A DNA stretch of 64,000 bases from Epithemia pelagica (Eukaryota > Protista > Bacillariophyta): contig OX337240.1 of the NCBI GenBank assembly GCA_946965045.2, forward strand, positions 992,001 to 1,056,000. The letters are read 5' to 3'. The notes beneath the pieces are model-generated. The model was not told where the DNA came from, did not search any database, and saw only the letters and a list, made by a program, of their open reading frames with translations. Each line of letters opens with the position of its first letter. The stretch's first letter is position 1. The position numbers and the translations under genes are program-made. Of this stretch, positions 2,029-25,012 are shown in pieces.

Positions 2029-2042
2029 TATGATCCCGAGAA

Positions 2043-5000
2043 GTGAATGCAGTTGCGAGCGAGATTGCTGTGAAGACGGCAAATTGTGAGCTGGACAGTC
2101 ATGCTGATACATGCTGTCTTGGTAACACTTGTTTGGTCTTATATGAAACGGACAAGGCCGAAGTGAGTGGATTCTCTTCACAACTTGGCAAGATAAAGGA
2201 GACCCCGGTAATCACGGGTATACTCGCATACGATGATCAAGACTCTGGCGAAACGTACCTTCTGTACTTTCATCAGGCGTTGTATCTTCCAATGATGGAT
2301 AAATGTTTGCTTAACCCAAATCAAATGAGAGAAGCCGGTGTTATTGTGAATGATATACCTCTCAAGTATATCAAACCGGAACAGAGAACAAGTGAATCAC
2401 ATGCTGTGATAGCCCCAGTCAACGGAGATGAAAGCAAAATCAAGATACCATTGGACTTGAAAGGGGTGATTAGTGGATTCACCGTGAGAAAACCAACATG
2501 GGAAGAAGTGGCAAATATAGATCCAGCTTATAGGATCGAAATGACCAATGATAATCCTCAATGGGCGCCTAATGACTCGACTGAAAGTGATGTCGATGAA
2601 AGGAAGCTCAGACAGGACGTTCAACAAGATATGGTCAGAAGGAAAGGATCAAGGTCAATCAATGACCGAATGGCTAAAATGGTTCGGATCAACTCAAGAG
2701 TGGTTGCAGAAACGAGCCATAGGAGAAAGGGGACCGTCGACCCAATCGCGTTGTCATCTCGTTGGGGAATCGGCCTATCTGTGGCAGAAAAGACTTTCCA
2801 ATCGACGACCCAATTAGGAGTGCGAGACTTCTCCCAAGGAGTTGGCAGTAAGAGGTTGAAACATACCGCCTACCAACTGAAGCATCGGCGATTAAGAGCG
2901 GATGTTTATACTGACACCCTCTTTTCTGACACTAAATCGTTGGGCCAAAACACCTGTGGTCAAATTTATGCGAGTGATTTTGGTTGGGTACATTTCTACC
3001 CTTTGGAAAGAAAGAAGGACGCCCATACGACGCTCGAGAAAGTGTTCAGTGACTTTGGGATTTTCAACAGTGTTGTCCCAGATAATGCCCCGGAACTAAC
3101 CAGTGGCAAATTCAAAAAGACAGCGCAGAAGTTTGGTTGTCGCATAAGGCCCATCGAGGCATGGACTCCGAACCAAAATCTCGCTGAAGCTAATATACGT
3201 GAATTGAAGCGTGCATATAGAAGAGAAATGAGAAGGACCAACGCCCCAGCAGTCCTATGGGACCATTGTCTCCAACTGGTTGCTGAGAGGCGCTCGAACA
3301 CAGCTTTCTCCTCTGGTCCCTTCGATGATGGTCCACCGATAAAGACATTAACGGGAGATACTCCGGACATTTCTCACCTGGTTGAGTACACGTGGTACGA
3401 ACCCGTTTGGTACTCCAACCCGGGTTTTGAGAATCGGAAACTCGGCCGATGGTTAGGCCCAAGTAAGACGGTAGGACAAGCGATGAGTTCAAAGATCCTG
3501 ACCTCAAAAGGGAAAGTGGTTCATCGTACATCCGTTTGGCCTCTGTCGGTTGAAAAATCGCACGACCCCTCATTCACTGCACAGAAAGAACAGTTCGACA
3601 GTGAATTGAAGGAAGCCTTGGGCGATCGTATTGAGGGCGTGGCTCCACAAGAGGATGAAGATCCAGATGAATTCGGTCACGACACACCCTTATATGAGGC
3701 TTATGAAGACGAAAAGCAAGGGGACGTACGTGTCCCAGAAGCAGACTCCTATAAACTTGACGCTTACGACAAGCTCATCTCGGCAAAAGTAATGCTCCCT
3801 TCAGGGGACTCGAAGAGAGCAGGCCAAGTAATTAGAAGAAAGCGGGATGCTGATGGGAACCCGATTGGCCAATCATCGACGAATCCTTACCTTGACACTT
3901 CAATGTATGAAGTAGAGTTTCAAGATGGACATGTCGAGTCCTATGCGGCAAATTTAATCGCGGAAAACATCTACGAACAACTGGATGACGACGGTAATCG
4001 CTTTAAGTTGATCGATCAAATCATAGATCACCGCAAAGATTCCACGGCAGTCCCAATTTCCGAGGGAACTTTCTTTCACAATGGTCGAGAGCATAAGAAA
4101 AGGACAACGAGAGGTTGGCAACTTTGCATCCAATGGAAGGACGAAACTACGTCATGGGAGATGTTGAAGGACTTGAAAGAGTCATATCCCCTTGAAGTAG
4201 CGGAATACGCAACAGCCAACCTTCTTGACAAAGAACCTGCTTTTAACTGGTGGGTAGGATTCACGTTGAAAAGGCGCGCCAGATTGATTAAGGCTGCCTC
4301 CACGACAAGGTATATGAGGAAGTGGCAGAAATACGGAATAGAACTGCCGAAGACGGTCGAAAGAGCCCTGGAGATAGACAAAGAAACAGGGACTGACTTC
4401 TGGGCGAAAGCTTTGAAACTTGAAATGTCAAAGATCTTTCCCGCTGTCAAAATATTGGAGGAGGGAGCCCCTCATCCGGCCGGACACCAGATCATACCTT
4501 GCCATATCGTTTTTGACATTAAAATGGATTTCACAAGAAAGGCAAGATATGTTGCTGGTGGTCATCGTACCCAAGAACCAGAAACACCAACATACGCTAG
4601 TGTTGTCAGTCGGGAAAGTGTCCGAATCGGGTTCCTCCTTGCGGCGCTAAATGGAATTGATGTCACAGCCGCTGATATAGCCGGGGCATATCTCAATGCC
4701 CCTTGTCATGAGAAAGTCTGCACCAAGTGTGGGCTAGAATTTGGGAAGGAGAACGAAGGTCGCTGTGCAATTATAACAAAAGCGCTATATGGTCTAAAGA
4801 CAAGCGCGTTTGCATGGCGGGAGCACCTTTCTACGACACTCCAAGAATCTTTGGGATTCCGACCTTGTCGGGCAGACCCTGACGTATACCTCCGAGCCTC
4901 GACGAAGGAAGATGGGACGAAATACTACGAACTTGTCTTCATCTATATTGATGATGTGCTAGTGATTTCGCATCGAGGTAAAGATATCCTGAATATGATT

Positions 5001-6002
5001 GATCAACACTACCTGTTGAAACCGAGCTCTATCGGAGAACCCAAGATATATCTTAGTAACCAAGTCGAAACCTTTGACATCGACGGAGATGTGAGTAAGC
5101 GTTGTTGGGCCCTTAGTTCAAAACGGTACGCTACTGAAGCGAAACGCAACGTCAAGATTTGGTTAGAAGAAAGAGGTCTCAGTTTGAAAACAAGAGCCCC
5201 TAGTGTCTTACCGACTGGATATCGTCCTGAACTGGATACAAGTGCATATTGTAACCAAGACTGGCATTCGTTTTACCAGCAGCAAATCGGTGTCCTAAGA
5301 TGGTTGGTTGAACTGGGCAGGATCGACATTACTGCAGAAGTCTCCATGTTGGCGGCTTTCTTGGCAGGACCCAGAGAGGGTCACGTCCATGCTATGCTGC
5401 ATGTTTTTGCGTATTTGAATTTGCATGATCGCTCAAGACTAGTATTGGACCCCTCTTATATACAACATGGGGAAGAGATTACCTCTGACTGGTCGGGATT
5501 ATACCCGGATGCGAGAGAAGACTTGCCAACAGACGCACCAGAACCTCTTGGGAACCCAGTCCAGATGACAGTGTTTGTTGACTCAGATCATGCTGGAGAT
5601 TTAGGGATATTGATATATCTGAATCGTGCTCCAGTGAGTTGGTACAGTAAGAAACAAACAAGTATTGAGACATCAACGTTTGGTTCAGAGTATATGGCCC
5701 TCAAAGTCGGTATCGAAATGATCAAGGGTCTACGATACAAATTAAGGATGATGGGCGTACCTTTGGACGGTCATGCACATATTCGGGTCGATAATATGTC
5801 TGTTGTTCATAACAGTACAATTCCCGAATCAAGTTTGAAGAAGAAGTCAAACTCAATCGCATATTATTTTGTTCGTGAGAATGTTGCTTCAGGAATGTGT
5901 CGAATTGCTTATGAACCGTCTAAGACTAACCTTGCTGATCTTCTTACTAAGATTCAAACAGGAACAGAGAGAACATGGTTGGCTTCGATGATCTTATTTT
6001 GA
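2043..6002 (+). CDS. pol: pol polyprotein (PR, IN, chromo-like, RT, RNase H), 1319 aa
   Basis: Protease CELDSHADT; integrase YTDT/PDNA/AEANIRELK; RT RKARYVAGGH, DIAGAYL, ALYGLK, YIDD; RNase H FVDSDHA, FGSE, VDN, ADLLTK. A 7-aa in-frame deletion (VTRRSRT) in RNase H is seen relative to element 2. Confidence 0.93.
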   Translation: MNAVASEIAVKTANCELDSHADTCCLGNTCLVLYETDKAEVSGFSSQLGKIKETPVITGILAYDDQDSGETYLLYFHQALYLPMMDKCLLNPNQMREAGVIVNDIPLKYIKPEQRTSESHAVIAPVNGDESKIKIPLDLKGVISGFTVRKPTWEEVANIDPAYRIEMTNDNPQWAPNDSTESDVDERKLRQDVQQDMVRRKGSRSINDRMAKMVRINSRVVAETSHRRKGTVDPIALSSRWGIGLSVAEKTFQSTTQLGVRDFSQGVGSKRLKHTAYQLKHRRLRADVYTDTLFSDTKSLGQNTCGQIYASDFGWVHFYPLERKKDAHTTLEKVFSDFGIFNSVVPDNAPELTSGKFKKTAQKFGCRIRPIEAWTPNQNLAEANIRELKRAYRREMRRTNAPAVLWDHCLQLVAERRSNTAFSSGPFDDGPPIKTLTGDTPDISHLVEYTWYEPVWYSNPGFENRKLGRWLGPSKTVGQAMSSKILTSKGKVVHRTSVWPLSVEKSHDPSFTAQKEQFDSELKEALGDRIEGVAPQEDEDPDEFGHDTPLYEAYEDEKQGDVRVPEADSYKLDAYDKLISAKVMLPSGDSKRAGQVIRRKRDADGNPIGQSSTNPYLDTSMYEVEFQDGHVESYAANLIAENIYEQLDDDGNRFKLIDQIIDHRKDSTAVPISEGTFFHNGREHKKRTTRGWQLCIQWKDETTSWEMLKDLKESYPLEVAEYATANLLDKEPAFNWWVGFTLKRRARLIKAASTTRYMRKWQKYGIELPKTVERALEIDKETGTDFWAKALKLEMSKIFPAVKILEEGAPHPAGHQIIPCHIVFDIKMDFTRKARYVAGGHRTQEPETPTYASVVSRESVRIGFLLAALNGIDVTAADIAGAYLNAPCHEKVCTKCGLEFGKENEGRCAIITKALYGLKTSAFAWREHLSTTLQESLGFRPCRADPDVYLRASTKEDGTKYYELVFIYIDDVLVISHRGKDILNMIDQHYLLKPSSIGEPKIYLSNQVETFDIDGDVSKRCWALSSKRYATEAKRNVKIWLEERGLSLKTRAPSVLPTGYRPELDTSAYCNQDWHSFYQQQIGVLRWLVELGRIDITAEVSMLAAFLAGPREGHVHAMLHVFAYLNLHDRSRLVLDPSYIQHGEEITSDWSGLYPDAREDLPTDAPEPLGNPVQMTVFVDSDHAGDLGILIYLNRAPVSWYSKKQTSIETSTFGSEYMALKVGIEMIKGLRYKLRMMGVPLDGHAHIRVDNMSVVHNSTIPESSLKKKSNSIAYYFVRENVASGMCRIAYEPSKTNLADLLTKIQTGTERTWLASMILF

Positions 6003-6137
6003 GTGCGTTTCCCGCCAACAGATGTTGGGACTGGGTACGTCCTGCACCCTACTTGATATTTGGGACTCTAAGCAGGTCTAGATGGAATGATTGATGGAGA
6101 AAGGCACAGTTACCCCACTAATGAGCGGTAGAACTGT

Positions 6138-6145
6138 GAGGGGAC
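6138..6145 (+). promoter_or_regulatory. Polypurine tract GAGGGGAC
   Basis: Immediately 5' of the 3' LTR. The same GAGGGGAC precedes the 3' LTR of element 2. Confidence 0.7.
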
Positions 6146-6256
6146 CAAAATATGGCTATGGTATTGGGCGAAATGTAGCGATAGTTTAGGCCTCTAAGCT
6201 TGAGGCATGTGATAGACACAATTTTATTTTCGAGTCACTATCATGCGCGTATTTTG
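6146..6256 (+). repeat. 3' LTR of element 1 (111 bp, CAAAATA...TATTTTG)
   Basis: Repeat of 1-107. The start is inferred from the PPT and a perfect 7-bp terminal inverted repeat. Confidence 0.85.
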
Positions 6257-6696
6257 ATGCGACACCATATTCGAAATATTTCTCTCTTTGGTAGATAGTC
6301 GTACAACTTGCCCCCAAAACAGTCCATGACACCCATACAACCTTGGCCCCCGAAACTTTTTTCGCAAAATACCCCATCTTTTTGTTTCGGGGGCACTTTT
6401 GCCGTTTTATCGGTTTTTCCAAATGTCAATACACTTAATTTTTCAATTTAATAATTTTAAATCCGTTACGCATGCAATGTGGCAGGCGGTCCGACCTCCT
6501 CCGCAAAATCCCGGGGGGTCTCTTTGCTCTACAGTAAACCGTCTGCTCTCGCCCGGGAGAAATTTGGACTTTTGGTGGTTCCACCCCGCCCCTTTAATAC
6601 TACTACGAGAAATTCTGTCCACCTAGCGGGGGCGGCTACAAGGGTGTAATTGTTTGTAGCCACCCCCAATCTCTCTGGTTTTCATTTCCAAAATAG

Positions 6697-6800
6697 CGTC
6701 GTGTCATTGTCTCAAAAACATAAAGAATGACTATTAGGCACCTCCACCTTAGAGGAGCTATCTATCGCTAAAATTCGCTCATAAACGCGACCCTTTCTCG
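6697..6800 (-). repeat. 3' LTR of element 2 (104 bp)
   Basis: Matches 15661-15763 and follows the PPT AAGAGGGGAC on the minus strand. Confidence 0.88.
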
Positions 6801-6959
6801 GTCCCCTCTTGTGATTCGGTAGATCACTTTTTTTCGATAGCCCATAGCTACCGTAATCATGCCCATCATATATCCATTCCAACTGGACCTGCTTAAAGAT
6901 CAGTCTTCCTTCTGACTGCAGGGCGTACCCGAACCTGTTTCGTAACAGTGGGAAACGCA

Positions 6960-9900
6960 CTAATATAAAATCATCTCCGCCAACCGCTTTCTTTCTGTAC
7001 CGGTTTGAACCTTGGTCAAGAGATCTGCAAAGTTCGTCCTTGATGGTTCATATGCAATCCGACATATACCATTGGCAACGTTCTCCCTTACAAAATGATA
7101 TGCAATAGCATTCGACTTCTTGCGGAGAGTCGACTCCGGTCTGGTTCCGTTCTGTACGACCGACATATTGTCCACCCTTATGTGGGCATGACCATCCAAT
7201 GGAACGCCCAGCATCCTCAATTTATACCTCAAGCCTTTTACCATTTCAATACCAACTTTCAAGGCCATAAACTCCGAACCAAACGTCGAGGTTTCGACAC
7301 TGGTTTGCTTCTTTGAATACCAAGTTATTGGGGAACGGTTCAAGAAGATCAAGACCCCTGTTCGAGACCGACGTGTGACCAAATCACCAGCATGGTCCGA
7401 GTCAACAAATACTGTCATTTGGACAGGTTTACCATGCGGTTCTGGGGCATCTGGCGGAATCTCCTCTTTTTCACCCGGATATAACCGGACCAATCCGCCA
7501 CTGGCTCCTCCCCATGCACGATGTAAGATGGATAGAGCACCAGTCTTGACCTGTCATATTGGTTTATGTACGTGAAAACGTGGAGGAGAGCGTGTACATG
7601 ACCTTCTCTCGGTCCTGCCAGTTTAGCAGCCAATATGGAGACTTCTGTCGTGATATCAATTCTTCCAAGCTCCACTAACCAACGGAGCACTCCAATCTGT
7701 GGTTGGAAAAAGGATTGCCATTCTTGGTCGCAATAGGATGAAGTGTCCAACTCAGGACGGTAACCGGATGGGAGGACGCCTGCCACGCGAGTTTTGAGGA
7801 TCATATCTCGCTCTTCCAACCATATCTTCACATTTCGAATCGCTTCTGTAGCGTACTTCTTGGAACTCAAGGCCCAACATCGTTTGTGTTGGTTGTATGC
7901 GGCCAACATAAATCCAATTCGGACACTTTCTCGGGAAACAACACTCGCGTACGTCGGTGTTTCGGGTTCTCCTGTCTTATGGCCACCTGCAATATATCTT
8001 GCCTTTCGAAGAAATATTTTCGACATTTCAAGTTGCAGTGCCTTGGCCCAAAAGTCTGTACCGCTTTCCCTATCAATTTCCAATGCCCTTTTGACGTTCT
8101 TGGGCAGTTCAATACCGTATATCGGGTTGACTTGGCCGCCTTGATTAATTGGTTGCGCCTCTTCAAAGCAAAGGTGACCCACCAAGCAAAAGCCGGTTCC
8201 TTGTCTATTAAGTTTGCAACCACGGCATATTTGGCCACTTCCAATGGATTGGATTCCTTTAGGTCTTGCAACTTCTCTCATGGCGTCGATCCGTCTTTCC
8301 ATTCGACACACATAGACCATCCTCTCGTTGTTCTTCTTTTCTTGTGCTCCCTTCCATTCCAATGAAAGGTACCATCCAAGATGGGGATAGCTGTAGCGTC
8401 CTTCTTGTGGTCGACAATGCTGCTCAGAAGGTGATATTTATTGCCTTCTTCATCCAGTTGTTCATAGATGTTTTCGGCTATCAGATTGGCTGCGTAGGAT
8501 TCAACATGCCCGTCCTGAAATTCCACTTCATACATTGTTGTATCGAGGATTGGGTTTGTTGATGGGCGTCCAACAAGGTTCCCTTCCGCGTCTCTTTTCC
8601 TTCGTTTGACTTGCCCTGGACGTAATGTGCCTCCTATCGGTAACATGACTTTTGCTGTAATAAGCTTGTCATAGGAGTCAGTCTTGTACTCGTCGAGGTC
8701 CGGCTTTCGAACATTCTCTTGCTCATTGTCCTCATAAGCGTCATAAAAGGGAGTGTCTGTCCCATCTTCTTCGGCCTCGTCTTCTTCAATTGGCATGCCT
8801 TCGAATCTGGCGCCTAATACTGCCTTCAAATTGGCATTGAATTGTTCTCGCTGAGCCGTGAAGGTTTCATTGTGGGATTTCTCTGCAGATAAAGGCCATA
8901 CCGACGTTCTATAAATGACCTTCCCTCCTTTGTCCGTAAGGATTTTAGAACTCATGGCTTGACCAACACTTCGACTAGGTCCAAGCCATCTACCCAATTT
9001 TCGACCTTTGAACCCAGGGTTTGAATACCAGACAGGGTCATACCACCGATGTTCCACCAAGTGTGATATATCTGGTGTGTCCCCTGTCAACGTAGTGAGT
9101 GGAGGACCGGCATCAAATGGACTTGTCAATAAGACTGTGTGAGATTGTCTCGCTGCAACCAACTCAAGACAATGATCCCAAAGAACAGAGGGTCCTCATC
9201 TCGCGGCGGTACATCCTTTTCAGTTCCCGAATATTGGCCTCTGCCAAATTCTGATTGGGCGTGTACGCCTCGATAGGCTTGATCCGACAACTAAACTTGT
9301 GCGCCGTCCATCTGAAATTCCCACTCGTCAACTCTGGAGCGTTGTAGGGAATGATACTTTTGAAGATCCCATCATCACTGAATACACGTTCAAGTGTTAT
9401 AAGGGCATCTTTCTTCCTTTGCATTGGGTAAAACTCAACCCAACCAAAGTCCGTTGCATATACTTGTCCGCAAGTATTTTGCCCAAGCGACTTGACATCG
9501 GAGAAGAGGGTGTCAGTATAAACATCCGCTCTCAATCTCCGGTGCTTAAGTTGATATGCCGTGTGGCGTTATCTCTTGCTTCCTGTGGAGTCGGAGAAAT
9601 CACAAACTCCCAATTGCGTTGTAGCCGAAGCTGTTTTCTCAGCCAAGGGAATACCTATCCCCCATCGTCTCGCCAAAGTCACAGGATCAACAGTCCCCTG
9701 ACGACGATGCCTCAGGTCGGCTATCGTTCTTGTATTCACACGAACCATACGAGCCATTCTTTGATGCAAGTCTCTTGGTTCTTTCGTACGGACGGTATTT
9801 GACTCTAGATCTACTCGGAGTTTCCTTTCGTCGGCATCAGCCAAGTCATTCGGGTCCCACTAACTTGGATCAGTGTTCTTGATCTCGTCCCAAGTTGGCT

Positions 9901-10357
9901 TCCTTACGGTGAATGAACTTATCACACCAACTAGGTCGAATGGGATAACAAGTTGTTTGCTTTCGTCTGAGAGAGGAGTGGCAATAGAATGGGAGAGGTG
10001 ATTTCTGTCCTCGCTCTTGATGAATTCTAAAGGCACGTCGTTTACGGTTACTCCCGCCTCCCTCATCTGGTTTGGGTTCAGGAAGCACTTGTTCATCATC
10101 GGCAGATGTAAAGCCTGATAAAAATACAGAAGGTACGTCTCAAATGTCGTCGGATCATCATAAGCCACGACTCCTGTGATGATAGGCGTCTCTTTTATAC
10201 TTCCGAGTGAATTCGTAAACCCACTAACTTCCGCCTTGCCTGTTGTATATAAGACCAAACAGACATCACCCAAGCAACAAGTATCGGCGTGACTGTCCAA
10301 TTCGCATGCTGCTGTCATGGCTGTGATTTCACCGCTTGTAATCGTACTGACATTATG
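6960..10357 (-). pseudogene. pol: pol pseudogene of element 2
   Basis: Fragments 9860-10318 (CELDSHAD), 9164-9535 and 8278-9162 (IN), 7415-8362 (RT) and 6960-7493 (RH). Several frameshifts. The RT core including YxDD is deleted (ESVRIGFMLAAYNQH joins KRCWALSS). Confidence 0.92.
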
Positions 10358-11016
10358 TCAGACACGATCATTCCGCTTCTTTCGCTGGCTCATGATTGCT
10401 CCAACTCCGGCCTCTCTCTCTTCTGTGGAGTCATCTCCATTATTCGTGGTGTGTCTGTGGCTGATGAAGAGCCATCGTTGTTCTTTCTCTTCTTCTTGTT
10501 GGAATTCACTCCCGATGCAGACCGTTTCTTGGTACTGCTGTTTTGCTTGTCACGCGTCTCTCGAACCAATTGCTGTTGCTCAGGTGTGAGCTTGATCCAC
10601 TGTCGATAAGGGTAGTATCTATTGGGGTCGAATTTCGTTGGAGTCTCTTGTTTGTTCTTGTTATTTCCCTTGTTATTTCCCTTGTTGTTTTTCTTGTTGT
10701 TCGAATGGATTGCAGAAATCCTGGCCCTTCTTGTTGTTGCACTAAATGAGACCTTGTTCTCTTGTACCTCTGCAAGGTATCCTGAGGCAACTTCGAATGA
10801 GAGTCAAAGCGTTGGGGTTGCGAGGATTTGGTTCTTCGCGCTTTCCAGACGTGAATCATGGATCCCTGTGAGGAGGATCCTAATCTTCCTTTCTTCACTG
10901 ACAAACTCTCCTGTTGATTCAAGGTCCGAGAAGGCACGTTGGAGTGATTCGATGTATTTTTCATAGTTGAAATTCCTCTTCGTGCCATGATCATAATAGT
11001 TTGTTTCCAAAGTCTG
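10358..11016 (-). pseudogene. gag: 3' half of gag of element 2
   Basis: QTLETNYYDHGTKRNFNYEKYIESLQRAF...GVGAIMSQRKK aligns with element 1 gag. Premature stop at 10804-10806 and a frameshift near 10440. Homology stops abruptly at about 11016. Confidence 0.85.
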
Positions 11017-11245
11017 GAACGAAAATGGACCTTTTGTTGCCTCGCGTATTGTTGGTGGAGTCTTCTATCAGCATGACCACGATCTGCCAATGGACTAGCA
11101 AGAGATTTACAAATGGGAGGACGCCGACGAAGTGCTACTCCTCATTCGTCAGTTCAACTAGTGCTAATGCTTCTTCATTCCTCAGTTCGACTCATCATAG
11201 TGCTTCTTCATTATTTTACTAATTGCTTATTGTTACATTCCATAC

Positions 11246-14071
11246 TCATTCATCTATATCATCGTTTTGTTGCAACATATCCAATAGTTCTGACGTTGTT
11301 TGTGACTGTGCTTGACTTTGGTTTGCTGGTTGTGCTGTTGGGAGTCCGACCTCCCAGTCATCATCTACAGGCCCTTCAAGTTCCTCCAAACAGAACGAAT
11401 TGCTATCATTGGACAGTCCATACTCCAGTGTTCCTCCGTTCTTCTTGATCCATTTGTCAAACACATCGATCTCTTCCTGTGGCCGTTGGAGGTAGGCTGC
11501 CTTTATCTCACTTTCTGTTGTACCGAAAAGAAAAACCATGCGTCGTTGTAACCAGCGAGCCAATGCCTACATTCTACTCTTTTCCCCAGTTCCCCTGTTC
11601 CCCGCACTACCACGTTGTGTCCTGCTAAAATAGAAACGTTTGAATAAACTATTGAATGCTGGTTCAAGGTGTTAGCTTAGTAGCACAATCTGCTCTCAGC
11701 TTCATTGCAATGACTTACCTTCCAATCCCTGTTGACTATGCAACCATAGATTGCACCATTTCAAAAGATACTCCATACAATGACCACTTCCCAACATGTG
11801 GGCATAGTTAGTGATTCCCTCTGAGCCATACAATGCTACCCAGTCCCTGTAGAAGTAGTCCACGTCTCCTCGCTGGAAGGCAAAGATCTCAGCGTCCGAC
11901 AGGTCATTTTGTGCGTTGACTTTCTTCATGGCCTCTCTGAAATATTGAATGGAACTCTTGAATAGAGCTTTCTTTTGCTCGTCGACTAAGCAACAATCAA
12001 TCAATAACTCGAATTTGGGAAGCAACTTGCGTATTCTTACATTGTCCATGGTGATCTCGCCGACTTTGTTACTTGGCGTCTCGTATGGCAACTTCCATTG
12101 CGTCGGCAGAACTTGAGAACCAAGTATTTCCAGATTCATAAGACTCTGGATCTTGTCGGTGAACGCGGCAACTCGGTCATCTATGGTTGTTGTATCGGGC
12201 GGCATCCATGGTAATTCGATTCCATCCTTCGGATTCACAGCGTTATTCAGTCCGGTCTTCAGAACCATGCTAAGAAATTTTATGCCCATCCTGTTCTCCA
12301 TGTGGAGGAGACATGGAATGGCATCCATCATGAGAACAATAGCAATCCTTTTTCTCAAAGCCTTCACATTGTCAAGGCATTCCAAGGCCTTCTTGTATGC
12401 CCATTCACTCACTTTCTGACATTTCAGGCGCTTCTGAAGTTCTTCCAAGGTTCCAGTCATACGAAGTCGGCGGATCCTGAGATCGTTTGAAACGGATCTG
12501 GCGTATTGCTGTCTCTGTTCTGCACTGGCCTGCTCCAAGTAGAAGTGAATGGAGTACAGTTGTGTTCTCTGCATTTCAGTTCCATTCGAGTTTGGATCCT
12601 CTGCCATTGACAATTCAGAATGCTCCTTCAACGCCTCAAGATCCTTTGCAATAGCGGGAAGCGAACTCTTTTGAAATTCTTCGACTTCTTGTTCCATGGA
12701 CTCTATGTGTTCTTCTGTCAGCATTTTCACATGCCTGCATATTGACGTGGGATCTTGATCATGATCCAGTTCTAGACAAGTGGAACACTTTGATGGTTTC
12801 GTGCCAGATGGTTCATGGAGTTGACCACTGTGGATGGCGCATTTTGAACAAGGGAACTTGTGTTGTTTTGCAGCTCCACCTCTGCCGCTCAACTCCCAAT
12901 CGCATTTCATATCGCAGTTCGTACAAAGAGTGGGCTTCTTGATTCTATGCTCCTTGGATACGACATCGACGGCCTCCTTTATTTCTTCCAGAGTTCTGGC
13001 AAACACACCCAAGACGTTGGTCGTTGTTTCTGGCATTGCAACGCACCCAACAGGGAAGACCGATTGTTGTGATTGTGTGTAGGGGTTGGACGGGTCATTA
13101 AACTTGATCCCCACGAGAGTATGGGAAAGATTTTTGGTGAACAGAGCACCACCAAGGCTTTGGGCGATCCGGATAGACTTGACCACGGTCTCAGTCCCCA
13201 TTACATGACCAGCCTTTAGCAGACATACTAGAACATTGGCAGCTCGGAAAGCAAAGCCCTCTGTTCCATTCTTTGAGTTAGTCTTTAGAATGTAGGGACA
13301 AAAAACCCGACCAAATGTCTCGACCATTGTAGCGTATGCCTTCATGCAACCTGAAGAGGCAAGCAACGTCTTGACCCGTGGAACTCCGTCTGTTTCAACA
13401 GTTCGGAGGAGTTCGATTCCTTCATAGTTCAAGACTCCGCCACACAAATCCATTTGTTTCAGAATCCGGTGCGGAGTAAACACATTCTCCCGAATGTAAT
13501 CTCCTCGGAACACAGAATAAGAACACTGCTTGATTTGGCCCTCATGAACAGTGTCGTCCAAGCATAATTTGGCGATTTGTGAGTAGAAATACTTCAATGA
13601 GCGACTATTGGTGGCACGAATGTTCTTTGTGGCATCTTCAATCATGTTGCAAATGTGTTGTACAAGGGTATCTGCCTGTTCGTTGGTTGTTACGGTGTTG
13701 GGGAGACGTCGGCTTTTACAGGACGTACAGTTTCTTTCCAGTTCTATGATTGTTTTCTTTGCTGTACGCAACTTATCGGCTTCGTTACGAAGCTGTTTGG
13801 TCATAGAGTCGTTCTTTTCTTGAGATATTTGCAAACACTCTCTCAAACGGAGTACTTCTTGTTGTAGCGTCGTCACCTCTGATGTTCCTGGTGCATCGGT
13901 ATCAGGGATAGTGCTGTGAAGTTCAGTAGTAGTTGGGGACTCTGTACTGAATGCATTCTGTACGACTTCCACAGCAACGGATGACTCTTCGTTTATTGAA
14001 GATTGATTGTCTACAATATTGACAGAGTTCGTTTGTTCTTCGGTATCGGAACTGTACTGGTTCTGGAGCAT
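11246..14071 (-). pseudogene. RAG1/Transib-like DDE recombinase/transposase, with one 60-bp intron (11659-11718) and an in-frame TAG at 11567-11569
   Basis: Colinear RAG1-core motifs: SL[G]GA (D600 site), DMKCDWELSG (D708), FPCSKC, CLLHMENR, ITNYAHMLGSGH and, after splicing, SQQGLEAFNSLFK (E962). The intron has GTAAGT, CTAAC and CAG signals. The frame is open upstream of the ATG to about 14281. Confidence 0.75.
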
Positions 14072-15660
14072 CTCAATGGCTTCCGTCGATGGCTCTGGTT
14101 GGGTGGCTTGATCTTCGTTCTCTTCTTCGTCATCTTCTTCTATGTCCGAGAGGCAGGCACTGGGACCAATCGTATTTGGTTGGAATCGGCTTGAAGTGAA
14201 CGTATTAACGACGTTCTTCTTTTGGTCTGCTTCGTCTTGTTCTTCTTCTGTCGAGGATTTGACTGGGTATTCTCGTCGTCGTCAGAAATTCTATGAGTTG
14301 GTTTAACTAAGTTAGTACAATGCCATGCCGAACATTTGTATGGACCCTTCGCACGTTTCCTATTTACTTTCAATTCAGGGCTGGACCGTTCGCCGTTGTC
14401 GGTGTTCACACATTGACTACAGGACAGGAAATCTTCGTGTTCAAATACCTTCATTCGATTGAGACCGAAGACAGAACAAGGATAGTTGTCTTCGCTCTTA
14501 AAGTCTTGAATGATCTTGTGAATGCGGCGCTGTTCCAGAACAGAGTTCTCGATGGTTCCTTCGTCTTCAAGTCGTTGACTGCGAGTTCGTTTTTCGGAGG
14601 AGCAGCAGATAAGGGTGGTGGAGGAGCACTACTTCTCTTCTTGCTGGCTCGACTTGGCTGTTGTTTTCGAATGACTCTGGAAGGCTTAGGACGACTGATG
14701 GAAGTCTTCTTGTTCTTCTGGACTGAGGGAGATGGAGGGGATTGACTAGCAGATTCGTTCTCATTGTTGGGGCAATGGTTGGAATCGGTACGCAGGGAGG
14801 GAGGTAAGAAAAGATCATTTGGAAGGCAACATGAACAGGGATCCTGGGAGTTTTGGTCGGGATGGGAACGGGTAGATGGTCTTGACATCGGTCTTTGTGT
14901 TTGTCTTTAACTAAAAGGAAGTGTTGGAATGGTCGTCTCCTTCGACATGAGAAAGGGAGGTGCACTGATGATGTTGGTTTTTGGAAATTTGGTCGAGACT
15001 AATGTGCGATTGATGTAGAAATATTGTACATACATTAATGGTAGTGTTGGTACGCCGGCTGAACTTATTCGGCCATCTCATTTTTTGGATGGCATCATCC
15101 GACAAAAAAGGGGCTGTTGTTGGATGAGGCGTTTTTGAGAACCTTTCGGATATCTGAGAGCGAGACCAAGGGCGGGGAATGTTACTTGGATGACTGTCGG
15201 ATGATTTCCGACCGTTGGTCTCGCTCTCAGGGGTCTGATAGATCCGTTGAAAGGGCTCCAAGTTAGGGGCTAGCCTAAATCTCTGTAAATTCGGCAAAGG
15301 ATAGTTTTTCATTTAACAAAAGGGTTTCTCACTGTTTGTGCTATAGTAAATCCGCAAATTTATGAGAGCGTCTCGGCAGGGCCGGCGATGACCGTTTACA
15401 CCGGTAGCTCGTATTGACGGCAAAGAACAGGCGCGTCCGCCATTGCCAGGGTGTGCGCAGTAGCAGACCACACCCCTCACTAGTCCGGTCTGGCTCCGTT
15501 GCAAGTCAGATACTCGTATTCAACGAGACTAGGTCCTTGGGCAAATCATATGGACCAATCTACTTAGTCCGATCCAGATATTTCCCGACCTTCCCAGGCC
15601 ATTGTGCCCTTAGCTCTTATTCTTCTTTCCTCTCAGCTCAGAGTCTTGGGTCTGATAAAC

Positions 15661-15763
15661 CGTCGTGTCATTGTCTCAAAAACATAAAGAGTGACTATTA
15701 GGCACCTCCAACTTAGAGGAGCTATCTATCGCTAAAATCGCTCTTAAACGCGACCCTTTCTCG
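15661..15763 (-). repeat. 5' LTR of element 2 (103 bp)
   Basis: Matches 6697-6800 and is followed on the minus strand by the PBS and a leader homologous to that of element 1. Confidence 0.88.
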
Positions 15764-15916
15764 TTTCCTCCACCACGATAACAACACGACAATACTATTC
15801 TGAGATCAGGCAAAAGTGAAAGCCCTAGTTACTCAGTGAGTTGTCATTGGTATTTGAAATTTCTGTAGACTCAGTACTGAGCGCTACGTAGCCGCTGGAG
15901 CACCTCTACGACCACC

Positions 15917-17800
15917 ATGGCCGACGACGGCGTAGAGGCCCGAGATTCTTCCACCAAAGACCAAGAGATGGATGAAGCAAGTTGCAACACAACTGATGTT
16001 GACAACAAGAAAGTCTACTACGAAGGCGAGGAGAAAGAATACGTTGTGAAGTTTATTTTTCGCCCCGACAAGAATGAAAACACCAAGGTAGCATCAACCC
16101 ATTTCTCAGTTCTTCAAGTTATCCGCCAAGTATATCCAGAAATAACTATTTTCAACAACCACGGGAGAAAAGTGAAAGATCTAAACACTCTCAAGAATTA
16201 CAACGATTATGCGAGGAATTACGAATTGCACTTCATGAAAGGCAATGACAAGAAACAACGAGATCCACTGTACCTCATCTTTCATCGCATTCATTCAAGA
16301 GTTCCGATCAGCCAGATACGACGCCACCATTCTGTCGAGCAAAGATTGAAAGAACACCACGGCAAAATGCTAGTTCATCACTGGAAAGAGGACGAGACAC
16401 GTACTTCGAATATCGGGTTTTTCGTTGGAATCGATCCTGCAAATACCATGGAAAGCGAAGTGACGGAAAGACTCATCAAAGAGATCTATAAAGAAACCAA
16501 ATGCCCAGAAAAGAAGATCCCGAAGTTCCAAATCCATTTCTCCTCGCCATTTACATATACCCTTCGCAAGCGCCACCGATCAACAAAGGCATATGGCCTC
16601 CAATGCCGACAAGAAGATGCCAAAGAGATTTTACGGCTTCTAAATGAAACTTTCAAGAAGGATCCCAAATTCATGTTTCACCGTTTTAAACACGAAAGCG
16701 ACGAAAGCAGAACCTACTATTTGGAATCAATTTATGCCCAGAACGACTTTCTCTCTGATCACAAAGTGATTCCGATAGAGGGTGTGAATGAGGACATTAT
16801 GTTCTATCTCGAAGGAAAAATCTTTGAAATCGAAGGAGTTACAGAAATTTCGCGCCATAAGAAACTTGAGGAAAAAGGTCGTTGGAACATTCATACCACA
16901 GAGGCCTACTTTGACTCCGTTGCCAACAAGTTGGAAGACTTCATAGCGGATTGGGTACGAGAGATCATTAGCACGGAGAACAGGAGCCCGGGCAATCTAC
17001 CACAACCAGCACGAGTCGCATACAAGCATAAACGCCGAATCGCCGAAGACGACGATACAAATGAAGTATCTTATGAGACATATTTGTCCTCATGCGCTTC
17101 CTTATATGCAAAAGAGAATATGTTAGACGATGATGACGAAGCAAACGATGCTCGAGGAAAGCCGCCTACTGGATCATCCGCAGCAACTCAAGCCTGGATC
17201 AGCCCTACAAACGTGAAGACTGTCCTCAACGTTCCAAAAGTTGTGGAAACCAGACGATCCTCCACAACACCAAGCCAATTGACTACAAACGACGATCGTG
17301 ATAAGCGAGTGATGGCCGAAAACGCTCGCCTGGAAAAAGAAAATGCTGACCTCAGAGAACAACTGCGACGTGCGAAAGGACAAGAAACTAGCGAACAACA
17401 GCAAGCTGACAGCTCCAACACCCAAGGACAACCCCCCACCAATATGAACAATACCCCTTCTATTCAGGAACGCGACAGGCAATATCCTCCTCGAGAATAT
17501 GCCCAACCCAGGTCTCAACATCCTCCTCAACCACAAGGACAGACTCCCATGTCTGATATTGAACGTATCATTTCTGCAGTAAATGCAGCAGCAGAAGCTC
17601 GGTTTCAAGCTCTAGAACAGCGCCTTATCCAGTCTTATCACCAGCAACAACCAACAACACCGTCCGCCGCCTCAACAGAAGGTTCTCAGGCCACGGAACA
17701 GACAAATGCCACTCACAGTCCAGTGGACGTGAGTATGACGCTACATCCATCCAACCTGGATGTTAGCGGATACGACAGTGTTACCGATGAGCATCAATAG
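15917..17800 (+). CDS. LINE ORF1 (627 aa) with C-terminal coiled coil and Q/P-rich tail
   Basis: Long intact ORF directly upstream of ORF2, overlapping it by 41 nt. Confidence 0.8.
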   Translation: MADDGVEARDSSTKDQEMDEASCNTTDVDNKKVYYEGEEKEYVVKFIFRPDKNENTKVASTHFSVLQVIRQVYPEITIFNNHGRKVKDLNTLKNYNDYARNYELHFMKGNDKKQRDPLYLIFHRIHSRVPISQIRRHHSVEQRLKEHHGKMLVHHWKEDETRTSNIGFFVGIDPANTMESEVTERLIKEIYKETKCPEKKIPKFQIHFSSPFTYTLRKRHRSTKAYGLQCRQEDAKEILRLLNETFKKDPKFMFHRFKHESDESRTYYLESIYAQNDFLSDHKVIPIEGVNEDIMFYLEGKIFEIEGVTEISRHKKLEEKGRWNIHTTEAYFDSVANKLEDFIADWVREIISTENRSPGNLPQPARVAYKHKRRIAEDDDTNEVSYETYLSSCASLYAKENMLDDDDEANDARGKPPTGSSAATQAWISPTNVKTVLNVPKVVETRRSSTTPSQLTTNDDRDKRVMAENARLEKENADLREQLRRAKGQETSEQQQADSSNTQGQPPTNMNNTPSIQERDRQYPPREYAQPRSQHPPQPQGQTPMSDIERIISAVNAAAEARFQALEQRLIQSYHQQQPTTPSAASTEGSQATEQTNATHSPVDVSMTLHPSNLDVSGYDSVTDEHQ

Positions 17801-20800
17801 AGGAAACAACACTTACTTAGCAACAAACAACAACTATCTGCAAGTACTGAATAGCTTAGAAAATTCACCAACGATACATCTACTCAATCAACCAGGAGCG
17901 ACTGATACCAATCAAGGAACCAGTCCTGAACAAGCAACCGATTCCACACAAGCAACCGATTCCATACAAGCAACCGAGTCCATACAAGCAACCGAGTCCA
18001 TACAAGCAACCGAGTCCATACAAGTAACCGATTCCATACAACCACATAATGACAGACACGCAATTAATGTCACAGAAAGAAGCAGCATCACGTCACGTGA
18101 GACAACAGCACAACAACCAGATACAGACCAAGCCAGTAGCACAAGCCAAAATCAACATAACGACTCACAAAACAGCAGCGACTCTACTAACCAAGAAGAC
18201 GAAGACAACGACAACCTCATAGTGGCAGAAAACTTAGCAACAAATCCTTTCATCGGGGATGAAATCAATGATAATGAAAAGGATGAAAATCATTTCAGAA
18301 TTTACTTTGCTAACGCAAATGGATTCACATTGAGTGAAAATGGTGGAGATTATGCCGAGTTCTTATTGGAGATGCAAAAACTTCAAGCGGATACCTGGGG
18401 AGTAGCGGAGACAAATATTGACTCAACAAAATCTGCGGTCAAGAACATCATACATGACACCACCAGAAAACACTTCGAATTCTCTAAAACAACAATCGGG
18501 AGCAGCAATATACCAGCGCGAAAACGGTACTACAAACCCGGCGGTACCCTTATGGGCTCACAGGGTAGTATCACAGCAAGAATTATTGATCAAGGCAGCG
18601 ACTCACTTGGCCGTTGGTCATTCCAACTGATGAATTGCAAGAACAACAAGAAACTCTTGGTGGTAGCAGCGTACCAAGTCTGTAAACAAGCAATCACCTA
18701 CACTGATAATGACGGAAACACAACAGTCCGATTGTATACAGCTTCCGCTCAACAATCAAGCATGCTGCTAGTCCAAGGAAGACGAGAATCACCGCGAGAA
18801 GCATTCATAATGGACCTAGGAGAATTCATTCAACGATATCAAGACCAACAGTGCGAGATCCTTTTGCTAGGAGATTTCAACGAGTCTATGTCAGACTCGG
18901 GTGAAGGAATGTCAGCACTCGGATTGCAATGCAATCTGGTAGACGTGATGCAACAACAAATAGGACATTCTGATTTCGGTACTCATGTTACAGGCAGCGA
19001 ACGAATTGATTTTATTCTGGCAAGCGAAAGAGTTGCAGACGCAGTTCGATATGCATGCTACGAGCCCTTTAAATTTCGAGGAAGCGGGGACCACAGATGC
19101 ATGATACTCGATCTAGATACGCTCGCACTTTTTGGAAACAGAACACAAGCCTTAGCACCAATGCCTTGCCGAGAATTCACCGCGAAGGACCCTATCGCTG
19201 TTCAACAATATATCGCCGCAAAGCACAGATATCTTCAAGAGCACAACTTTGGAACAAGACTAGAAAGAGCAAAAACTCACTGGACACCACAAGTTCAAGA
19301 GCAATTGGATGCCGATTTTCAACGAGCTGGGACTTTTGGAGCAAAGCAATGCACACGAAAGCCCAGAAATATAGCATTCTCGTCCAAGCTGGCAACGCTA
19401 CGTCGAAGAAAGAACATATTGCTCAAGACAATATCGTCTATCCGGCTAAAAAGGTCATTCGAAGAAGCAATTGCAAGATACAAAAATCAAGACGAAGAGT
19501 TTGAAATACCAACGACCCTGGCTGAATGCCAAGCGCTGTGTCGACAGATTCAACAACAGATTCGCCAATCAACTAAAGATGCTGTCTTCTATCGTCAGAA
19601 TGAACAACTGATCCAGTTACGGGATGCAGAGGCAAAAGGAAACAAGAAAAAGGCCAAACTCATCAAGAATCTCATGGCGGCAGAAAGAACCAAGAATATG
19701 TACAAGAAAATTCGCCAATGTCGAGGAGCGGAGAAAGCAGGAATCACTCGATTGGACGTACCAGCCGACCCTGACGACGTTAACTACAAATCCTGTGTTG
19801 ATTGGATCAGTATTGACACGCCAGAAGAAATAGAAAGTCGCCTCCTTCAACGCAACCAAACCCATTTTGGTCAAGCAGATGGTCTCTTTCCAACTCACCC
19901 ACCATTTTCTGAATGGATCGATTGGGGAGCGTCGACTCATGTAGCAGACCTGATTCTCGAAGGGCAATGGAACACAGAGGAACTCGATTCAGTCTCGCAA
20001 GATGCACTCCGCCACATGCAGACCCGAACAAACCTGGACGAAATCAAGGACACAATCACAATCAAAGAGTGGACCGAAAAGATTCGAACATGGCCCGAAA
20101 AGACATCGACCTCACCGTCTGGCTTTCACCTGTCTCATAGCAAGGCACTGGTCAATCCAATCTCCATTGAAGATGACGATGACGCAACTGCTCAACTGAA
20201 ACAACAACGACATCAACTTATCGAATGGCAAGTGGCAATGCTCAATCTAGCTATCAGCCATCGCTACAGCCTATCACGATGGAAACATATCGTCAACGTG
20301 ATGATATTGAAGGAACCAAACAATCATCGGATTCATCGTCTAAGAGTTATACACCTGTATGAACAGGATTATAACCTGATCCTAGCAGTGAAATGGAGAC
20401 AGATGATACGCAATGGTTCTAACAATCAACTTTTACATCCCCAACAGTTCGGTGGAGTTCCAGGAAAAGACGCTATCCTTCCAACCATGTTGGAAGAGTT
20501 CCAATATGAGATTAGCCGCGCGAGCAAACGGCCGCTAGTCCACCTCGATTACGATGCAACGGCGTGCTTCGACAGAATCGTGATGTCGTTTGGCAGCCTA
20601 GCATCTCGATCCTATGGCCAGCATCGATCAGTGGTCTTTATCAATGCTACAACTCTAGAGGATGCAAAATACTACCTCAAGACGCAACTTGGTGTATCAG
20701 AGAAGTTTTACAAACACTGCAAACTTTTCCCAATCTACGGTTCCGGACAGGGAGCAGGAAACTCTCCAGGAATATGGTGTGTAATCAGTTCGGTACTTTT

Positions 20801-23800
20801 TCATGCGTACGATGAAAAAGCTCATGGAGCGACATTTCGTTCTCCACAAGGAGAGATTGAGGCTCAAGTTTTTATGATAGGATTTGTGGATGACACCAGC
20901 GGGAGTATGAACGACTTCAACTTGCCCAAGCGTCAGTCACCGGAACATTACATCGTCAAGGCTACCAAGGATGCTCAAAGGTGGAATGATGTTCTACGAG
21001 TATCGGGTGGAGCTTTGGAAGATACCAAATGCTCCTATCACTTCCTCTACTTCGACTTTATAATTGATGGGCTACCGTACCTTTGCAATGGCCAGATTGG
21101 ACCTCGTATCAGCATACAGTTTAACAACAACAATTCACCGCATTCGCTAAAGCAACTCTCTGCTTATCAAAGCCATAAAACACTTGGCGTAATGAAATCA
21201 CCGGCTTCAACCGACCGAAGTCTCTTCCTTGCTCTAGCCAAGAAAAACAGTCAACATACCAGTGTCATGGCACGAAGCCCGTTTAATCGAACAGACGCCT
21301 GGGCGTATTATCATTCCGTCTACTTACCAAGCATTACCTACCCAATGCCATCATCATCCCTCTCTGACAAGCACTGTAAAGCACTCCAACGACAATTCAA
21401 GAAGGCCCTGTTACCAAAATGCGGTTATAACAGGTGCACTCCAAATGCAATCGTGTACGGGTCCCCAGATTTCGGAGGAATTGGTTTGCAATCCCTAGCT
21501 ACCGAACGAGGAATCTCACAAGTCTACATGTTCCTTGCGTGTTTGCGGTCCCAAGGATTGCCATCTGATCTTGCTCACATTACAGTGTCCTGGGGCCAGT
21601 GGCTAGCCGGTACCAGTGTATCTATTCTCGAAGATGTCAAAACTCCCCTCCCCCATCTAGCTCCCATGATGTGGCTTCCTTCTCTCCGATCCTTTTTAGC
21701 AACTGTTGACTGCAGAATTGAACTCGCACAAGATTTCATCATTCCTCTACAGCGGGAAAACGACTCGTTTCTAATGGACCACGCTTTACAATTTACCATG
21801 AAACCTTTGGATTTGCAACTATTGAACGCATGCAGATTGTATCTCGGTGTTACACTGGTTAGCGATATTACCACCTGCAACGGGCAATGCTTATCTTTAT
21901 CACCTACTCTTGGTCTGCATCTACAACATTCTACTCTACGAGGACTAACAGCCTACCAAGATTATCCGAGCACCAAAGCATGGAACTTATGGCGGAAATT
22001 TCTTTCAACCTTAACCACCGGCGATACTAACAGACGTCTCAATAACCCTTTGGGCAAATGGCTGAAAACTGGCTACTCAACGATACGGAAATGGAATTGT
22101 TATTTGTGCGAACAGTCATCTCGACTGTTTGTCCTCGATGGTGCTAACTACCGAATCTACCATGAAAACTTGTACCGCTGGTTCTCACCGACTGACCAAT
22201 TTACTCTCATTGTCCCAGCAGCTGCTGTCCCAGTTACGACAACACCTGCTCCGATCAACCAGAGGATTCTTCACAAGTATAGTCACCGTCTGGATCCTGT
22301 GCCACAGGAAGTCCCTAACACGTTTACTGCTCATGTGATGTCTTTGCCAAAGTGGGAACAAGATCTTCTTTCCGGATTTGTTCTCCGCTGCTCTCCTTCA
22401 ATTTTGTTCGAACAATTCACAAACGGACTTGTCTTGTGCAGCGATGGTTCCGCGGCTCTCTTTACCGGGAGCTTCGGTGCTGTATGTGTCTCCCATGAAA
22501 ACCAACGCCTGTTTGAATTGGCCGGCCCCGCCCCCGGATTCAGGACTTCATCGTTTCGGGAAGAAAGCTACGGCTATCTGTCCTTGCTACGTTCCATTTA
22601 TCACCTATGTCTTTTTCACAATCAGAATCTCCCCAACGATCTACACTTTTACACGGATTCATTGAGTATGATCGAAACCGTTAGACAACGTTTGGACTGG
22701 CAAGTTGAATACCCTTACTCAACAATGGGACCCGACTGGGATTTGCAGCAGTCGATAGTGTATACATTACGTCAGTTTCCCTCGATTCCTCCGCTCAGTC
22801 ATGTCAAGGCACATCAAGATCGATATCACCCGTATGAGACATTGCCTCTTGAAGCTCAATTGAACGTCCAAGCTGACCATTTAGCCGGTGAATACCGTTA
22901 CCCTACAACAATTTCTTCTCGGTTCAGCCCACTCATTACTGGCACTGTTGCTGCGTAGCATGGCCCGTCTGGGACCATTACATCCAACTACAGAAGCACT
23001 CTTCGCCGTCTTTCGAGCGATCCGGTTATTACAGAGTACCTGAAATCTAAACATCATTGGTCTTCTTCGGTCTTTGACTCGATTTGCTGGGACACACACG
23101 GTTCTGTGATGCGGGCAAACTTTCATCGCCGCCATTTTCTCACCAAATACGTCCACAACTGGCTACCAGTTGGCACTCTCAAACAACACTACGCCAACCA
23201 TTATACGTGCATGTGCCCAAACTGTTCGAACATACAAGAAAATCGCTCCCATTTCCTTCGCTGCCCGTCTAGACGAAACTGGACGGGTCCATTGTTCGAT
23301 GAGCTCAATGAATTTTGGACTGAGAATTCTTTCGATCCATGTCTCGTCACCATTCTTCGTGAAGCAATGCGCCTGTGGCTTGCTGACACTCCTATTGTGC
23401 TTCCGACTGTCCCTGCACCATATCAAGCCCTGATTATCCGCCAAACGCTTGTTGGATGGGATCAATTGTTCTTCGGTCGCTTTGTCAAAGACTGGATTAG
23501 TCTCCAAGACAAATTTGTCTCTGCTCATGAATTGAACCCTGTCAAGTTCTCTGGACATCGCTCTATTTGTGGCAGTATCAAAATTATATGGCAACACGTG
23601 CACAACCTCTGGACGCGCCGTAATCTGGACGTTCACGGTCGTAATGCTCCCACTCGTGAAGCTGCTTCTCTCGACCAAGCCCGTCGCGAAATTGTCGACT
23701 TGTATCTTCTGCGATCGTCTGTTCCTTCGGCAGATCGTACCTTCTTTTATGATTCCACTGCAACTCATTTTCTCCACGAAACCACCTCCACTCAATTACA

Positions 23801-24895: not shown

Positions 24896-25012
24896 TTAAC
24901 CTTTGGTGATGATAAGTTTGGATACTACGAAACCATTGTTGGTGGTGCTGGGGCTGGTCCAACATGGAACGGTGTTTCAGGTGTACATACGCACTGTACC
25001 AATACCCGCATT
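24896..25012 (+). pseudogene. OPLAH: Captured 39-aa fragment of 5-oxoprolinase (hydantoinase B domain)
   Basis: [39 protein letters not shown] matches the conserved oxoprolinase C-terminal motif. Flanking residues do not continue the homology. Confidence 0.8.

Follow-up and report, generated by a model that had tools for sequence, protein, structure and literature searches.

Introduction

The evolution of RAG1 is usually traced through Transib and RAG-like (RAGL) elements, relatives that can be recognised by their sequence. Among stramenopiles, a RAG1L-RAG2L transposon whose ends begin CACACCC and which makes 5-bp target duplications has been described in the pelagophyte Aureococcus by Tao et al. 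(2022), who also reported Transib-like proteins in bacteria, fungi and plants (PMC9435367). Because of the Aureococcus transposon, a stramenopile RAG-like element is not new in itself (PMC9435367). Here we compare with these systems a locus from the diatom Epithemia pelagica. It lies in a stretch of 64,000 nucleotides, analysed in full and hereafter called the window (contig OX337240.1, positions 992,001 to 1,056,000). On the minus strand of the window, between 11016 and 15416, lies what we take, with a probability put at roughly 0.85, to be a dead copy, truncated at its 3' side, of a cut-and-paste DNA transposon that has two genes, one of them encoding a transposase of the RAG1/Transib fold.

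An earlier, sequence-only reading had seen in two minus-strand open reading frames (ORFs; 11702-14071, 789 aa, and 11246-11563, 105 aa) an inactivated, spliced transposase gene of the Transib/RAG1 superfamily, and had suggested that a stramenopile RAG-like family would bear on the spread of such recombinases. A RAG1-fold family did emerge; the novelty of a stramenopile RAG-like element as such falls away in the light of Aureococcus. The element itself is wider than the range given there, reaching from its left terminal repeat at 15416 down to about 11016, and two of its properties had gone unmentioned, namely that it is a two-gene element with a convergent, BAH-like partner and that the window copy is nested in a copia retrotransposon.

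Results

A family of diatom proteins with a predicted RAG1/Transib-type core

The window copy belongs to a large family. A word-index search returned 21 close homologues (1,000-1,200 aa), which come from a single ENA assembly, plus one distant JGI protein, while an exhaustive profile search retrieved 2,645 representative clusters (50% identity) at E<=1e-3 in public data. The diatoms Seminavis robusta (CAB9529733.1) and Epithemia clementina supply the named members, which are hypothetical proteins. Dozens of paralogues lie on different contigs, decayed and internally deleted copies among them. In the literature on Transib or RAG1 in diatoms or stramenopiles, with Repbase outside the scope of the search, we found no description of the family.

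Which residues does the family hold constant? Across 22 members, down to 22% identity, D187, E662, C289, C292, H636 and H642 (numbered on the core of the intact member P0013) are invariant and D268 is near-invariant, and these are the columns that the sequence-only reading had picked as the D, D, E and C..C/H..H positions. The four presumptive zinc ligands have RAG1-like spacing: the two Cys of the C..C pair, FPCSKC in the window copy, come 21 and 24 residues past the second Asp, and the last His of the H..H pair stands 20 residues ahead of the Glu, an arrangement that matches the ZnC2/ZnH2 layout of RAG1. Further family motifs are TNCDMSCEWKL.GRGGAAKQ.TFPCSKC, PCILHMENRMGIK, MDNVRIRK and GITNYAH.IGSGH..EYLLHWRNL..HSQQGWE. 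Four additional residues, C309, C312, C325 and H472 (same numbering, alignment A6), are also invariant across the 22 members; their conservation suggests a second metal site in the insertion past the ZnC2 pair.

To place this core we modelled residues 335-1065 of P0013 with AlphaFold2 from a 16-sequence alignment. When the model was compared with the PDB by Foldseek, ranks 1 to 49 were all RAG1, amphioxus BbRAGL or HzTransib (E 1.5e-7 to 1.2e-2), and rank 50 was an unrelated protein (E 0.06). The top six VIA matches were likewise exclusively RAG1, RAGL and Transib, and in both sets the alignments cover nearly the whole core. In the model, D187 sits in a strand, D268 right after a strand and E662 in a helix, a placement that fits what is expected of an RNase-H-like Asp-Asp-Glu (DDE) enzyme. 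From D268 to E662 stretch 394 residues that are helical for the most part, in keeping with the large helical insertion that had been predicted for this protein. A language-model feature search, finally, gave as nearest clusters unnamed cnidarian proteins, PF26100 RAG1_RNase_H clusters and vertebrate V(D)J RAG1, with scores of 0.92-0.96. Judged by the model, then, the catalytic core has a RAG1/Transib-type fold, as the sequence-only reading had supposed.

On this reading the first gene encodes a transposase of about 1,100 aa, in which a Cys/His-rich N-terminal region and a coiled coil accompany a RAG1/Transib-fold core. The core combines an RNase-H-like domain that bears a D-D-E triad with a long helical insertion; a C..C pair comes after the second Asp, and an H..H pair stands 20 residues ahead of the Glu.

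Several results weigh against this assignment. The core model is of only moderate confidence, with a predicted local distance difference test score (pLDDT) of 72.8 and a predicted template modelling score of 0.42. Global template modelling scores (TM-scores) against the matched structures are low (0.2-0.3, root mean square deviation >20 A) because the modelled domains are poorly oriented relative to one another, so that the kinship with RAG1 and Transib rests on the exclusivity and coverage of the structural matches. The catalytic residues and zinc ligands were likened to those of RAG1 by order and spacing, not by residue-by-residue superposition. At the level of sequence, Pfam gave no match at E<=1 for the window ORF and 17 members, HMMER against the PDB (with a single sequence, a full-family profile and a C-terminal ZnH2-Glu profile) found no RAG1 or Transib match at E<=10, and when 5.8 billion proteins were searched with a profile, none of the matches bore a RAG1 Pfam domain.

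It might therefore be argued that the family is to be placed in some other DDE superfamily whose members have a large helical insertion (hAT, P, Kolobok, CMC/Chapaev or MULE) and that its likeness to RAG1 is the generic similarity of RNase-H folds. The missing sequence-level match to RAG1 or Transib and the low global TM-scores are what such a scenario would lead one to see, as are element ends that lack both a CAC start and a 5-bp duplication (see below). It is hard, however, to square with structural matches that consist exclusively of RAG1, RAGL and Transib over nearly the whole core. Hermes, P-element transposase and piggyBac, other eukaryotic DDE transposases that are also represented in the PDB, do not appear among those top matches. 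The language-model neighbours that bear RAG1 Pfam domains argue in the same direction, and we regard membership of another superfamily as improbable. What survives of the proposed Transib/RAG1-superfamily membership is thus the fold and the catalytic layout; membership of Transib proper is not supported, given that there is no sequence match, no CAC end and no 5-bp duplication.

An intron directly behind the catalytic glutamate

In the window copy, the catalytic Glu is encoded by a GAA at 11720-11722 (minus strand; QQGLE), the last complete codon ahead of a spliceosomal intron of 60 nt that runs from 11718 to 11659 (GTAAGT..CTAAC..CAG, phase 1). Removing it yields the reading ..HSQQGLE/AFNSLFKRFYFSRTQRG..SRM*ALARWLQRR, where the slash marks the junction and the asterisk an in-frame TAG at 11567-11569; at full length the stretch reads ..HSQQGLE/AFNSLFKRFYFSRTQRGSAGNRGTGEKSRM, the TAG, and then ALARWLQRRMVFLFG. 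The members P0013, P0019 and P0021 are intronless, single ORFs in the DNA, and read without interruption QQGWEAFNS.FK..YSRTQRGG...SRL(K/L).MA(R/K)W(I/L)QRR. Because they continue uninterrupted through the junction, the reading across the window intron is proven, and because they read through the same stretch, the TAG can be seen to fall on a column that is otherwise Lys or Leu.

Introns occur at the identical position and phase in L001 (60 nt), L006 (73 nt) and L007-L009 (63 nt), whereas L002 has none. All of them, the window's included, have ends of the form GT(A/G)AGT..(C/T)AG. In a maximum-likelihood tree of 33 cores (midpoint-rooted, for drawing only), the 12 intron-bearing members group together in a single clade (support 100/99) that sits within a set of intronless lineages, a topology that fits a single intron gain in the family. 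Since the intron directly follows the codon of the catalytic Glu, the C-terminal tail is, in this clade, encoded only by the spliced mRNA; an unspliced message meets a stop five codons past the Glu.

Is the intron removed? Contigs from four public runs (X1-X4) were placed on window positions 10900-15700, and one X4 contig omits exactly 11659-11718 (CT..AC on the plus strand, hence GT..AG on the minus strand), the same 60 bases whose splicing had been proposed to fuse the 789-aa and 105-aa ORFs. The joint was not found in X1-X3, genomic-looking runs with contigs of up to 0.5 Mb. At about 97.5% identity to the window, the X4 contig must stem from a close paralogue. It is most simply explained as spliced RNA; that the library type of X4 is unrecorded counts against relying on this.

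Contigs of all four runs, the X4 contig with the spliced joint included, also join 11800 to 12924, dropping 11801-12923 (1,123 nt). As the joint is common to the genomic-looking runs, a paralogue with this internal deletion exists as DNA; if X4 is an RNA run, the deleted paralogue is also transcribed and spliced.

The window copy is dead and truncated

The closest intact relative of the window copy is L006, a single-copy element of 6,143 bp bounded by 26-nt repeats, CAATACCAGCTAACGGTGTAAACGGT, whose arms (7433-7458 and 13550-13575) are 96% complementary. Homology between L006 and the window starts exactly at 15416 and ends at about 11018. At its start lies the left terminal inverted repeat of the window copy (15391-15416, minus strand; CAATACGAGCTACCGGTGTAAACGGT), which aligns to the 26-nt repeat of L006.

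Reading onwards along the minus strand, the N-terminus of the transposase gene is broken by two frameshifts. A first coding segment at 14610-14843 (frame -3) matches residues 2-80 of P0002 by tblastn and is out of frame with the rest. A Cys/His-rich segment at 14290-14601 (frame -2, again frameshifted) matches residues 84-186. The two segments together match the N-terminal region of the family, SPNKRTRS.. followed by PCSVFG.DR..FFFC.QC..NR..G.YTC.A.H, the latter motif being the one matched by the Cys/His-rich segment. The sequence-only reading had taken such upstream Cys-rich pieces for possible further exons; they turn out to be frameshifted parts of exon 1, intact relatives carrying them in one continuous ORF. 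The remainder of exon 1, with the coiled coil and the RAG1-fold core up to the catalytic Glu, occupies 11719-14266 (matching P0002 residues 194-1047 by tblastn and overlapping the ORF at 11702-14071). Exon 2, the C-terminal tail with the in-frame TAG, follows at 11246-11658.

The first catalytic Asp is lost. Where the family consensus has SLDGA with an invariant Asp (alignments A1, A2 and A6), the window copy has SLGGA, the Gly being encoded by a GGT at 13151-13153; across the site at which the window reads SLGGAL, the family alignment gives SLDGALFTKNLSHTL. The second catalytic Asp (NCDMK) is retained as a GAT at 12911-12913. All that is left of the second gene is its last 46 or so codons at 11019-11160 on the plus strand, convergent with the transposase gene, which read NENGPFVASRIVGGVFYQHDHDLPMD, an internal stop and QEIYKWEDADEVLLLIR against the C-terminus of the second ORF of L006; the right end of the element and most of that gene are absent. 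The copy is dead, then, as had been concluded from the Gly at the first Asp and the TAG, and the two frameshifts and the lost right end with most of gene 2 add to the damage.

Intact elements: ends and target sites

Intact elements measure 6.1-6.3 kb and have terminal inverted repeats of 16-26 nt. The P0013 subfamily comprises three copies of exactly 6,112 bp (L002, L004 and L005; 98.8-99.6% identity), which lie in three unrelated genomic contexts and are bounded by 23-nt inverted repeats, CAATAGCAGCATTTACTGTTCAT. The P0026 subfamily also comprises three copies (L010-L012; about 6.3 kb, 98.8-99.2% identity), with ends CATAGGCAGCACTTGG and CATAAGGAGCACTTGG, and L007 is a single copy with ends CAATACGAGCACCCCTAG and CAATAGGAGCACCCCTAG.

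The sequence-only reading had directed attention to the flanks of intact paralogues, where CAC-initiated terminal repeats and 5-bp target duplications were anticipated. Neither is seen. The shared start of the ends is CA(A)TA..(C/G)AGC; in four subfamilies and the window copy the ends begin either CAATA(G/C)(C/G)AGC or CATAGGCAGC. A candidate CAC-initiated repeat in L003, CACTATAGAGACAAT, found no corroboration: L003 is single-copy and without a duplication, and the ends defined by copies begin CAATA or CATA in four subfamilies. At L003 9488-9505 and 15866-15883, CACTA(T)AGAGA precedes CAAT at both ends, in inverted orientation, which reflects either a longer, CAC-initiated repeat in the L003 subfamily or an insertion into a palindromic site.

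No target duplication of 2 bp or more, 5 bp included, was present in the seven complete copies. A single flanking base is identical on both sides in all seven (a/a, t/t, t/t, t/t, a/a, c/c and a/a), for which the chance expectation is about 0.25^7 = 6e-5. The flanks fit a 1-bp target duplication. Against this, blunt insertion between two identical bases would leave the same arrangement, and no empty site exists for any complete copy. The transposition chemistry of the family is likewise something that we infer, and this too tempers the case: the transposase would excise and insert the element by DDE chemistry, with a target cut staggered by 1 bp.

A convergent partner gene

Every intact element that we examined (L002, L003, L006, L007 and L010-L012) has a second gene, of 504-578 aa, arranged tail-to-tail with the transposase gene. 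Between divergent subfamilies it retains 36-39% identity (E 2e-101 and 3e-80). Pfam gave no match to it. In a structural model, residues 12-170 match BAH domains and residues 455-566 match Tudor/KOW-like barrels; the model is of low confidence and poor overall (pLDDT 59), which tells against leaning on these matches. Language-model neighbours are BAH, Agenet, PWWP and Tudor clusters, all weak. On the strength of the model, gene 2 may be described as having an N-terminal BAH domain and a C-terminal Tudor/SH3-like barrel.

The convergent arrangement invites comparison with RAG2, but the 566-aa convergent gene was rejected as a RAG2-like partner on the grounds of its fold (BAH plus a Tudor-like barrel, no kelch) and of Pfam. 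Neither a kelch propeller nor a PHD was matched in the gene 2 model, and because it is without a kelch propeller gene 2 is not RAG2. The partner would tether or regulate the transposase on chromatin. Kelch-repeat genes do occur near two elements (L004 1394-2539, 6162-7262 and 14369-15601; L007 2443-3558); they lie outside the terminal repeats and are host genes, not RAG2-like partners.

The window copy is nested in a copia element

The window copy is flanked on both sides by a Ty1/copia element on the same strand. On one side, 15417-15768 (minus strand) is the 5' region of the host copia, comprising a probable short long terminal repeat (LTR) at 15661-15768 and then an untranslated region. Positions 15417-15661 correspond, in reverse complement, to the 5' region (window 107-342) of a neighbouring plus-strand copia. 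On the other side, 6697-11015 (minus strand) holds the rest of the host, with a gag that lacks its N-terminus, protease, integrase and reverse transcriptase, joined to the transposon at about 11016. These assignments come from ORFs, from tblastx and from an RVT_2 Pfam match in the sister element. On either side of the transposon-in-copia composite stands a direct repeat of 108 nt (6697-6805 and 15661-15768, 97% identical), which may be a very short copia LTR. One copia copy in L001 lacks window 6475-6876, a span that includes the 108-nt repeat.

Could the RAG1-like gene be cargo, or an integral gene, of the surrounding copia, spread by reverse transcription? The copia 5' region and gag enclose the gene and are on its strand, the direct repeat stands on both sides, and the whole 7.5-kb block exists twice: in L001, window 15480-8011 recurs as one piece at 98.2% identity. 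Yet the transposon's own terminal repeat marks precisely the boundary at 15416/15417, and copia copies free of the insertion exist. Their contigs diverge from the window at 15417, and they and the neighbouring plus-strand copia read ..GCCGT/TGA(A/C)AAGA.. across the insertion site, through which the sister copia A is continuous. No LTR was found 3' of the gene, in window 11100-11300. Moreover, the window copy is truncated and inactivated, and the intact members that we examined (L002-L012) are all free-standing, with inverted repeats and no copia attached. We therefore reject a copia origin, on the terminal repeat at the junction and the insertion-free copies above all, and consider it very improbable. 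Least probable of all is a domesticated host gene family, which would account for the long intact ORFs in many copies, the chromatin-protein resemblance of gene 2 and the hypothetical-protein labels that are all public databases offer, but is at odds with near-identical copies precisely bounded by inverted repeats in unrelated contexts and with dozens of paralogues across contigs, some of them decayed or internally deleted.

Given a cut-and-paste transposon nested in copia, the history of the window copy falls into three steps. First, the transposon landed in a Ty1/copia element, within its 5' untranslated region. A deletion then took away about 1.7 kb of the transposon, namely its right end and the greater part of gene 2, along with about 1 kb of copia from the untranslated region and the gag N-terminus: past 11016, the X4 contig runs on into gene 2 and the window into copia gag, and tblastx against copia A places A 1387 at B 10995. 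The Asp-to-Gly change, the stop and the two frameshifts accumulated in the window copy, and the composite was subsequently duplicated in one piece.

The surroundings are rich in repeats. Window 1-6800 (plus strand) and 6697-11015 (minus strand) are two Ty1/copia elements placed tail-to-tail, with pol regions that are 71-79% complementary. Window 15794-23972, about 8.2 kb, is missing in the paralogous L001 arrangement, where 23973-24174 abuts 15471-15793 with a 16-nt overlap. It contains plus-strand ORFs at 15917-17800 (627 aa) and 17760-22958 (1,732 aa), neither with a Pfam match, and probably represents a further inserted element. A block of about 4 kb from window 23973-28104 is found twice in L001 (3538-6634 and 16629-19193), once on each side of the composite. 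The L001 region around the composite is a mosaic of nested repeats.

Discussion

We lean, if only slightly, towards a broader proposition: that diatoms are home to a large lineage of RAG1-fold transposons, of superfamily rank and active today, which numbers about 2,600 clusters (50% identity) and lies outside all described Transib and RAG1L, with different ends, 1-bp staggered integration and a BAH plus Tudor-like chromatin-reading partner of its own. If this is true, a RAG-type nuclease gained a chromatin-reader helper twice, independently. A family visible only by its fold, abundant and apparently active in diatoms, broadens the known diversity of RAG1-type enzymes. It also provides a comparison case for asking which of CAC ends, 5-bp stagger and hairpin chemistry are intrinsic to the fold, and how and why RAG-type nucleases pair with a chromatin-reading subunit. 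For diatom genome annotation the consequence is practical, in that genes of the family are now called hypothetical proteins and are mis-modelled owing to the intron. The window copy, a dead fragment, serves to mark the family, and with it a composite of transposon nested in copia that underwent duplication afterwards.

The position of the intron, right behind the codon of the catalytic Glu and in one clade, could gate the production of active enzyme. In the Drosophila P element, control is exerted through the third intron of the transposase gene, which must be removed for full-length enzyme to be made. Full-length diatom transposase would likewise require that its intron be spliced out, a parallel that we offer as an analogy only.

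How does the family compare with the systems with which we began? With Transib (HzTransib, PDB 6pqn/6pqr) it shares a DDE triad on an RNase-H-like domain, a C..C pair past the second Asp and an H..H pair before the Glu, and the habit of a cut-and-paste element with short terminal inverted repeats. It has no detectable sequence similarity to Transib. Its transposase, at about 1,100 aa, has roughly double the length; it includes an N-terminal Cys-rich region and a coiled coil, and its helical insertion is larger. The element's ends start CA(A)TA..AGC rather than CAC; its apparent target duplication is 1 bp rather than 5 bp; and it adds a second, convergent gene. With the RAGL transposons (mouse RAG1, amphioxus ProtoRAG with BbRAGL, PDB 6b40, and Aureococcus AanRAGL) it shares a two-gene organisation, and with ProtoRAG in particular a convergent gene pair. 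Chromatin-reader-type domains in the diatom partner may, by functional analogy, parallel the PHD finger of RAG2. The partner is nonetheless predicted to consist of a BAH domain and a Tudor-like barrel, with neither kelch nor PHD, and is thus not RAG2L, and no RAG1 Pfam domain is detected in the diatom family. AanRAGL differs further, its CACACCC ends and 5-bp duplications standing against diatom ends that lack a CAC heptamer start (PMC9435367); AanRAG1L groups with RAG1 by sequence, whereas the diatom family is far more divergent. The family is best called one that belongs with RAG1 and Transib by fold and is distinct from both in sequence, transposase size, ends, 1-bp duplication and partner.

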